The notes under the pieces are model-generated. The model did not search any database. It saw nothing but the letters and a program-made list of their open reading frames with translations, and was not told the origin of the DNA. DNA of 54,884 bases, from assembly GCF_001194135.2 (NCBI RefSeq), contig NC_069005.1:26721299-26776182 (forward strand), read 5' to 3'. The DNA comes from Octopus bimaculoides (lineage: Eukaryota). The position numbers and the translations under genes are program-made. Positions 5,434 to 5,451 of this stretch are shown one piece after another. Every line of letters begins with the position of its first letter. The first letter of the stretch is position 1.

Positions 5434-5451
5434 AGCAACTTTAGCATCTTC
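5434..5451 (-). CDS. ACAP: Candidate 18-nt phase 0-0 microexon of ACAP (EDAKVA)
   Basis: tcttttaatatttattggtag|GAAGATGCTAAAGTTGCT|gtaagt in non-repeat sequence. Phase matches the preceding exon. Longer versions from upstream AGs tested contain stops. No transcript evidence. Confidence 0.5.

Follow-up and report, generated by a model that had tools for sequence, protein, structure and literature searches.

A probable 18-nucleotide cassette exon in the BAR region of an Octopus ACAP2-like gene, with apparent orthologs in other molluscs

A 54,884-nucleotide (nt) stretch of the Octopus bimaculoides genome (GCF_001194135.2, contig NC_069005.1, positions 26,721,299 to 26,776,182; this whole stretch is hereafter the window, and positions are given in its own numbering) very probably contains a genuine 18-nt cassette exon of an ACAP2-like gene at 5434-5451 on the minus strand. 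The exon would be spliced between a constitutive exon ending in DDDLAS, 22.4 kilobases (kb) upstream, and an exon beginning KSLTRFADAM..., which lies beyond the window, and would add the hexapeptide EDAKVA in frame; it is probably the fifth coding exon of the gene. A sequence-only reading of the window had proposed a frame-preserving 18-nt ACAP exon adding EDAKVA after DDDLAS, and this is what is seen in the RefSeq models of Octopus ACAP2.

Three exons of the host gene flank the candidate on its upstream side in the window (Table 1). They correspond to Octopus ACAP2 residues 18-77 and differ from it only at intron-split codons; the exon nearest the candidate, for instance, agrees with Octopus ACAP2 at 20/21 aligned residues, and the single mismatch is an intron-split codon. 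A tblastn search with human ACAP2, taken purely as a lead, helped direct reading to locate these exons; the conclusions rest on proteins retrieved from databases. The 59 residues spliced from the window match ACAP1 BAR-PH in the PDB (4ckg and others; E 4.9e-7), and the Octopus proteins have the Pfam domains BAR_3, PH, ArfGap and Ank (Ank_2), with the PH, ArfGap and Ank parts lying outside the window. Their best Foldseek matches are ACAP1 BAR-PH and ACAP1 ArfGAP-ANK (3jue/3t9k), and ACAP2 ANK (6if3) was also matched. Assignment of the host to an ACAP2-like Arf-GAP gene with the order BAR-PH-ArfGAP-ANK is sound. The gene is long, with ranges of 248, 310 and 168 kb for Octopus ACAP2 and 102 kb in Haliotis. 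Three Octopus assemblies were encountered, GCA_001194135.2, GCA_006345805.1 and GCA_951406725.2.

Along the minus strand the locus reads ...gtcttttaatatttattggtag / GAAGATGCTAAAGTTGCT (window 5451..5434) / gtaagtatcaaagcatg..., or, with a short acceptor, ttattggtag / GAAGATGCTAAAGTTGCT / gtaagt, with gtaagtatcaaagcatgtttttttcttttct as the downstream stretch. The DDDLAS exon ends ...GATTTGGCCTCT / gtaagt at 27840 in phase 0, and the 18-nt candidate is therefore in frame; the 18 in-frame nt and GTAAGT donor described by the sequence-only reading are present on the gene strand as it stated. The candidate has the features of a microexon: 18 nt, a multiple of 3, phase 0 to 0 and tag/.../gtaagt borders. 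EDAKVA is encoded only once in the window when all frames are searched, and the 27-mer spanning both splice sites is likewise unique there. The distance of 22.4 kb from the DDDLAS exon was also given correctly, being 22,389 nt as assembled across an interval that holds six N runs. A search of the whole window found no exon for the next segment, KSLTRFADAM..., and the sequence-only reading had likewise seen no exon matching human TSLTKFSDSL between the DDDLAS exon and the candidate, gaps aside; the next exon (KSLTRF...) lies beyond the window.

The evidence that carries the identification comes from Octopus proteins. A protein search was made with a query padded to 800 residues with shuffled filler, its E-values reflecting only the 59 + 49 real residues, and the Octopus cluster representatives all read ...GVRDLGQYFKDDDLAS-EDAKVA-KSLTRFADAMTEV... 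(4/4). Seven RefSeq models of ACAP2, drawn from two assemblies of Octopus, have the hexapeptide with DDDLAS before it and KSLTRF after it, namely XP_014782047.1 and XP_052832589.1 of O. bimaculoides and five isoforms (XP_036369181-85) of GCA_006345805.1, which we take from its accession to be O. sinensis. Peptide and junction are identical in these models and in the window, with no sequence-level difference, and to judge from the alignment, agreement at six of six residues in precisely this place is not reasonably put down to coincidence. The models themselves make no statement on regulation or function. The expectation that annotation would easily miss the exon was wrong for Octopus, in which 7/7 RefSeq models, including XP_014782047.1, carry it; as a sequence feature the exon is already known, because it is present in public Octopus protein models.

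The hexapeptide could also have been the start of the next constitutive exon. This was ruled out: KSLTRF... aligns with human TSLTKF..., and skipping isoforms join the two flanks directly, so EDAKVA is an insertion. Relative to vertebrate ACAP2 it adds six residues, as had been predicted.

Transcripts from a cuttlefish contain both forms. The cluster concerned is 99% identical to Acanthosepion pharaonis ACAP and consists mostly of open reading frames (ORFs) of ~3-kb contigs from public RNA runs. Among 11 assembled full-length ORFs, three read DDELTT-DDAKVA-NSLIRF and eight join DDELTT to NSLIRF. The inclusion mRNA, ACTACT / GATGATGCAAAAGTTGCC / AATTCT, was found in five runs and the skipping mRNA, ACTACT / AATTCT, in five others, and the two differ by an exact 18-nt cassette that is identical to the octopus exon at 15/18 nt; two of the three differences are synonymous. 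Inclusion and skipping contigs come from different runs within the same two run series, which fits sample-dependent splicing. The inclusion contigs belong to SRR25158147/51/54 and SRR8281665/89, the skipping contigs to SRR8281664/93, SRR19578104 and SRR25158135/29.

The gene also varies at further short segments. Isoforms P0123/P0124/P0245 of GCA_006345805.1 show a seven-residue segment, TFKITKK, between BAR and PH, a long basic linker insert of 59-86 residues, and MC as a two-residue insert close to the C-terminus. In the cuttlefish contigs the linker insert occurs in 0/3 with the microexon and in 4/8 without it, numbers that are too few for a test.

The sequence-only reading had pointed to mollusc ACAP proteins as a place where isoforms with and without the hexapeptide might be found, and annotated pairs of this kind indeed occur in nine genera and a scallop cluster, covering four gastropod lineages, oysters and scallops. 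The inserts are DDSKVS in Haliotis, GDNKVA in Patella, DDSKVA in Pomacea, DGEKVA in Littorina, DGSKVA in Babylonia, DNAKVS in Biomphalaria, DDTNVS in Crassostrea, DDTMVS in Saccostrea, DDTKVS in Ostrea and DD[ST]KVC in the Mizuhopecten/Pecten cluster, and the consensus at this junction is [DEG][DGN]x[KN]V[ASC]. Among land snails, Candidula has DNTKVS and the Bradybaena models have no insert. Genomic 18-nt exons with AG/GTAAGT borders were located in Crassostrea, Mizuhopecten and Pecten (Table 1), in the same intron and phase in 3/3 genomes checked. When the 4.6/5.8-kb introns of the two scallops are compared, conservation is highest in a 172-nt segment (83% identical, E 8e-46) that extends from -28 to +123 around the microexon. 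Among 100 distinct ACAP N-termini, including the representatives of an exhaustive HMMER search, the insert is confined to molluscs; both annotated isoforms of the nemertean Lineus are without it. An exact scan of metagenome contigs with the 27-mer gave 0 matches and is uninformative, as cephalopod DNA is not expected there.

The octopus exon shares with these cassettes its length of 18 nt, intron and phase, GTAAGT donor and hexapeptide consensus; it differs from them in having E at position 1 and no RefSeq skipping isoform. On this sequence comparison it can be taken as the octopus ortholog of an alternative microexon that each of the three sampled molluscan classes possesses and that is probably older than the cephalopod/gastropod/bivalve split.

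Several variants were observed at or near the site. A Tegillarca granosa model (P0140) has four inserted residues only (DDSK), which could be a 12-nt exon variant or an annotation error. The gene models of Lottia gigantea (GCA_000327385.1) and of the annelid Capitella teleta (GCA_000328365.1) have no insert, and each intron holds a good candidate exon. The Lottia candidate, ttttggtag / AGTGACAATAATAAAGTGTCT / gtaagtaatc, has 21 nt and would encode SDNNKVS; in Patella vulgata, isoforms with GDNKVA are annotated. The unannotated Capitella candidate lies in the same intron as the molluscan exon, reads acttgcag / GAGGATCAGTCTGTGGCC / gtaagtatccatgcatgc and would encode EDQSVA; only two other AG-18-GT sites exist in this 0.9-kb intron. 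A motif, GTCCAGTT, is found ~20-30 nt past the donor in the oyster and in the scallops, where it forms part of gctagtccagttttagctccagtttgcacc; it is absent from the octopus flank and may be a bivalve-specific intronic element.

Several observations weigh against a genuine cassette exon in the octopus, the first of which concerns chance. We shuffled the 27-kb intron 1000 times with dinucleotides preserved and counted the pattern of AG, 3-27 nt open in frame, and GTAAGT. This pattern appeared 2.9 times on average (probability of at least one, 0.93), and 0.51 times (probability of at least one, 0.39) when the acceptor also had pyrimidines at 13/20 positions or more; on the gene strand the intron itself holds GTAAGT at six decoy positions. 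The splice-site pattern by itself is not above chance, and these counts, together with the weak octopus acceptor, are what would be seen if 5434-5451 were a pseudo-exon of a long AT-rich intron that is never spliced in. The call is lifted above chance because the hexapeptide is that of annotated Octopus ACAP2 proteins at the same junction. This 6/6 match in seven RefSeq proteins refutes the pseudo-exon in practice; with the closely similar cuttlefish cassette and the orthologs throughout the mollusc genera sampled also against it, we regard a chance pseudo-exon as scarcely credible.

The remaining points concern alternative use. The Octopus support rests on RefSeq models, which are predictions, and in this genus the skipping form is known from one non-RefSeq model only, O. 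vulgaris CAI9740769.1, in which DDDLAS is joined directly to KSLTRF and which is the only Octopus model without the hexapeptide. The exon could be near-constitutive in Octopus. That it is essentially constitutive there, with alternative use lost or minor, is quite possible if short of probable: it is present in all seven RefSeq models, among them five isoforms that differ from one another at other places, and the sole model without it was produced by another pipeline. However, the acceptor is markedly weaker than those of the neighbouring exons, and the cuttlefish, the closest sampled relative, expresses both forms, with most full-length ORFs skipping. A genuine cassette exon remains our preferred reading.

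The same counts gave a side observation on the intron. In window 1-27833 on the minus strand, in-frame pseudo-microexons number 1 in the real sequence versus 2.9 in shuffled sequence with GTAAGT donors, and 1 versus 5.6 with GTRAGT donors; on the opposite strand the counts are 3 and 15, respectively. The deficit on the gene strand could mean that decoy exons are selected against, or could follow simply from repeats and the composition of the strand. Elsewhere in the window, a repeat ending ...ggcacaaggccagcaat...aggggagggg / GTAAGTTGAT occurs in three copies, each with a consensus donor hexamer, which are decoy 5' splice sites in gene orientation.

The splice sites of the octopus exon are unequal in strength. 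Its acceptor has pyrimidines at 13/20 positions with no run longer than 6, GG at -5/-4 and AG at -23, and falls short in strength of those of the three neighbouring constitutive exons, which have 15-18/20 pyrimidines, runs of 10-17 and no AG within 60 nt. To call it T-rich, as the sequence-only reading did, was generous. The acceptor of the Lottia candidate, ttttggtag, resembles it. The donor 9-mer, gtaagtatc, is common to the octopus exon, its Crassostrea ortholog and the Capitella candidate, and the scallops have gtaagtacc. Recognition would most likely depend on the consensus GTAAGT donor compensating for the weak acceptor, a combination that leaves room for regulated skipping.

One way in which inclusion might be regulated is the neural programme of SRRM3/4 and Srrm234. 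The published signature of microexons that depend on the eMIC domain combines a strong branch point and UCUC-rich tracts with a long AG-exclusion zone and a UGC near the acceptor (PMC8797185). The octopus exon is like them in its length class, frame preservation, weak 3' and strong 5' splice site and its location in a gene for a trafficking-GTPase regulator; vertebrate ACAP2 also hosts an SRRM3-type islet/neural microexon, though at another site. Acceptors with UGC beside AG were found in scallops (ccctgctttctctgtgcag; at -16 and -5 in Mizuhopecten and at -16 in Pecten), which also have UCUC-type tracts, and in the Capitella candidate (cttgcag; -5), and the two cuttlefish forms dominate in different sequencing runs of one series. 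The cis code itself is absent in the octopus: the nearest TGC is at -88, in agreement with the earlier remark that no UGC stands beside the acceptor, the AG-exclusion zone is only 23 nt long and no TCTC or CTCT occurs in -40..-1. The oyster Crassostrea also has no UGC within 150 nt of the acceptor, and no UCUC context either, and the presence of the exon in all Gnomon-type Octopus models does not suggest tight restriction. A neuron-specific microexon that is included through the Srrm234 eMIC domain as a tissue switch is doubtful on this evidence.

Control from the downstream intron is a tentative proposal that we consider unlikely, if not to be dismissed. Here an Rbfox-type GCAUG at +13 and/or a U-run of the type bound by TIA or ELAV proteins would promote inclusion independently of eMIC, with neural and muscle enrichment. 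In the octopus the GCAUG is followed by U7CU4, and the Capitella candidate has UGCAUG at +12 and +29 (GCAUG at +13 and +30), the first GCAUG position being that of the octopus. The asymmetry of the conserved scallop block, with ~120 nt after the exon and only 28 nt before it, points to control from the downstream side. However, Mizuhopecten has no GCAUG in the nearest 150 nt, none was noticed in the part of the Pecten flank that was read, and in the oyster a UGCAUA at +16 and a GCAUG at +104 are all that is found. A GCATG would fall in +7..+40 by chance with a probability of about 0.04 per species, a nominal value that is optimistic because several motif classes were inspected. The octopus GCAUG should be taken as a lead and no more; with the adjoining U-run it may help inclusion of the proposed cassette.

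We also considered where the insert falls in the protein. In an AlphaFold2 model of the Octopus inclusion isoform, computed with a 33-sequence alignment, residues 15-69 form a helix, 70-79 a loop and 80-148 a second helix; the predicted local distance difference test (pLDDT) score is <50 at residues 74-76, E78 and D79 close the loop, and A80-A83 make up the first turn of helix 2. In the AlphaFold model of the cuttlefish skipping form, the helices span 15-69 and 74-143 and are joined by a four-residue turn at 70-73 (block pLDDT 85). In both models the insertion site falls at the connection between helix 1 and helix 2, where the sequence-only reading had placed it in the ACAP BAR domain. The insert is predicted to lengthen, loosen and acidify this connection, from ~4 to ~10 residues with a low-confidence loop, although the difference is indicative only and is a further point to be held against our interpretation, because the models represent two species and were built from a single mixed alignment. 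A rigid four-residue turn would thereby become an acidic loop of about ten residues at the connection and the start of helix 2. With the helix 2-3 turn at the opposite end of helix 2, the connection would be situated near the centre of the dimer and not at the tip. Inclusion may be regulated and may influence ACAP function, possibly with consequences for membrane bending.

Comparable exons are known in related proteins. Bird ACAP2 isoforms (P0229 vs P0233) differ by a seven-residue cassette of 21 nt, RKKPDHI, in the PH domain (FKTWN[RKKPDHI]RRWF), which we presume to be the islet microexon of a preprint cited below. The vertebrate microexon shares with the molluscan one its gene family, its nature as a small frame-preserving cassette and its location in a membrane-binding module, but it lies in the PH rather than the BAR domain, is unrelated in sequence and is non-orthologous. 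The preprint names ACAP2 among the hosts of islet microexons (bioRxiv 10.1101/2022.04.02.486809). In the ARF-GEF cytohesin-1, a 3-nt microexon alters a membrane-interacting domain with a documented functional consequence (PMC6724607). Both cases involve an ARF-pathway regulator and a membrane-interacting domain; the cytohesin-1 exon, however, belongs to another protein, lies in a PH domain and has 3 nt, and the documented effect is that of cytohesin-1 only. Our literature search found no paper on a molluscan BAR-domain ACAP microexon, and nothing specific on microexons in octopus or cephalopods or on eMIC there.

The surroundings of the exon and of the gene gave further observations. The description of the locus as a repeat-free patch holds for about 5404-5668 but not beyond, since a repeat family starts 31 nt past the donor. 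This family has the structure (TA)n-43 nt-(TA)n with the 43-nt unit catcgtttaacgtccgctttccatgctagcatgggttgga, and further copies occur in the window (Table 1). An origin of the microexon from a repeat was considered and rejected because the region 5415-5500 is single-copy in the window. On the scale of the whole gene, a leucine-rich-repeat gene of 558-735 residues is nested on the opposite strand within an ACAP2 intron in Octopus (two species), Haliotis, Crassostrea, Mizuhopecten and Pecten, and an enolase gene adjoins ACAP2 in Haliotis and O. vulgaris; the nested gene and the enolase neighbour represent conserved microsynteny across mollusc classes.

Table 1. Features of the ACAP2-like locus in the window and of corresponding sites in other species (positions with an L prefix refer to loci of the other species)
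Feature	Position	Strand	Remarks
18-nt cassette microexon (very probable), GAAGATGCTAAAGTTGCT, EDAKVA	5434..5451	(-)	Octopus ACAP2 residues 78-83
Weak 3' splice site region, gtcttttaatatttattggtag	5452..5475	(-)	possible branch point cttttaat at ~ -14
Consensus 5' splice site, GTAAGTATC	5425..5433	(-)	donor GTAAGT
GCAUG, Rbfox-type core motif	5417..5421	(-)	intron +13; candidate downstream enhancer
U-rich run, tttttttcttttctgt	5401..5416	(-)	+18..+33, directly after GCAUG; possible intronic enhancer
Upstream constitutive exon (DDDLAS), (N)GFVGGVRDLGQYFKDDDLAS	27840..27900	(-)	phase-0 end, donor GTAAGT
ACAP exon, LVKLCSSMIETGKAFHTAS(N)	30008..30066	(-)	tblastn lead and direct reading
ACAP exon, (R)ASLEDAENDIELLEVRLEK	37339..37396	(-)	tblastn lead and direct reading
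(TA)n-embedded 43-nt repeat, copy nearest the microexon	5302-5403		
(TA)n-embedded 43-nt repeat, further copies	about 11078-11120, 33324-33366, 49044-49086, 52519-52573		
Repeat copies with decoy donor, ggcacaaggccagcaat...GTAAGTTGAT	39134, 47024, 47253	(-)	consensus donor hexamer in each
Crassostrea 18-nt ortholog	L001:9296-9313		AG/GTAAGT, same intron and phase
Mizuhopecten 18-nt ortholog	L002:9113-9130		AG/GTAAGT, same intron and phase
Pecten 18-nt ortholog	L015:11795-11812		AG/GTAAGT, same intron and phase
Lottia candidate, SDNNKVS	L003:5970-5990		21 nt
Capitella candidate, EDQSVA	L004:6596-6613		unannotated
Motif GTCCAGTT, oyster	L001, about 9335-9345		
Motif GTCCAGTT, scallops	L002, about 9150-9175; L015, about 11830-11860		

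For genome annotation the finding is of small value, the exon being present already in the RefSeq models of Octopus and many molluscs. As an exercise in reading raw sequence, a true 18-nt exon was picked out of a 27-kb intron without tools, a choice that only homology justified. The occurrence of the cassette in several molluscan classes, possibly reaching annelids, may be a new observation, although it follows from existing annotation. An age that predates the mollusc-annelid split would find its support in the Capitella EDQSVA candidate, which lies in the orthologous intron with UGC-AG, gtaagtatc and UGCAUG. It is conceivable, though unlikely on present evidence, that the exon belongs to a lophotrochozoan microexon set older than that split, regulated in nerve and/or muscle, which would tune packing of the ACAP BAR-PH dimer or partner binding through a flexible acidic loop and would be an independent BAR counterpart of the vertebrate PH microexon.

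An ancient optional exon in the BAR domain of an Arf6-type GAP would be a clean test case for microexon regulation outside vertebrates and insects, a value that rests on the conserved D-D-x-K-V motif and the conserved downstream intron. ACAP2 carries small cassettes in two membrane-binding modules, BAR in molluscs and PH in vertebrates, which hints that isoform tuning of ACAP2 may have been selected repeatedly.

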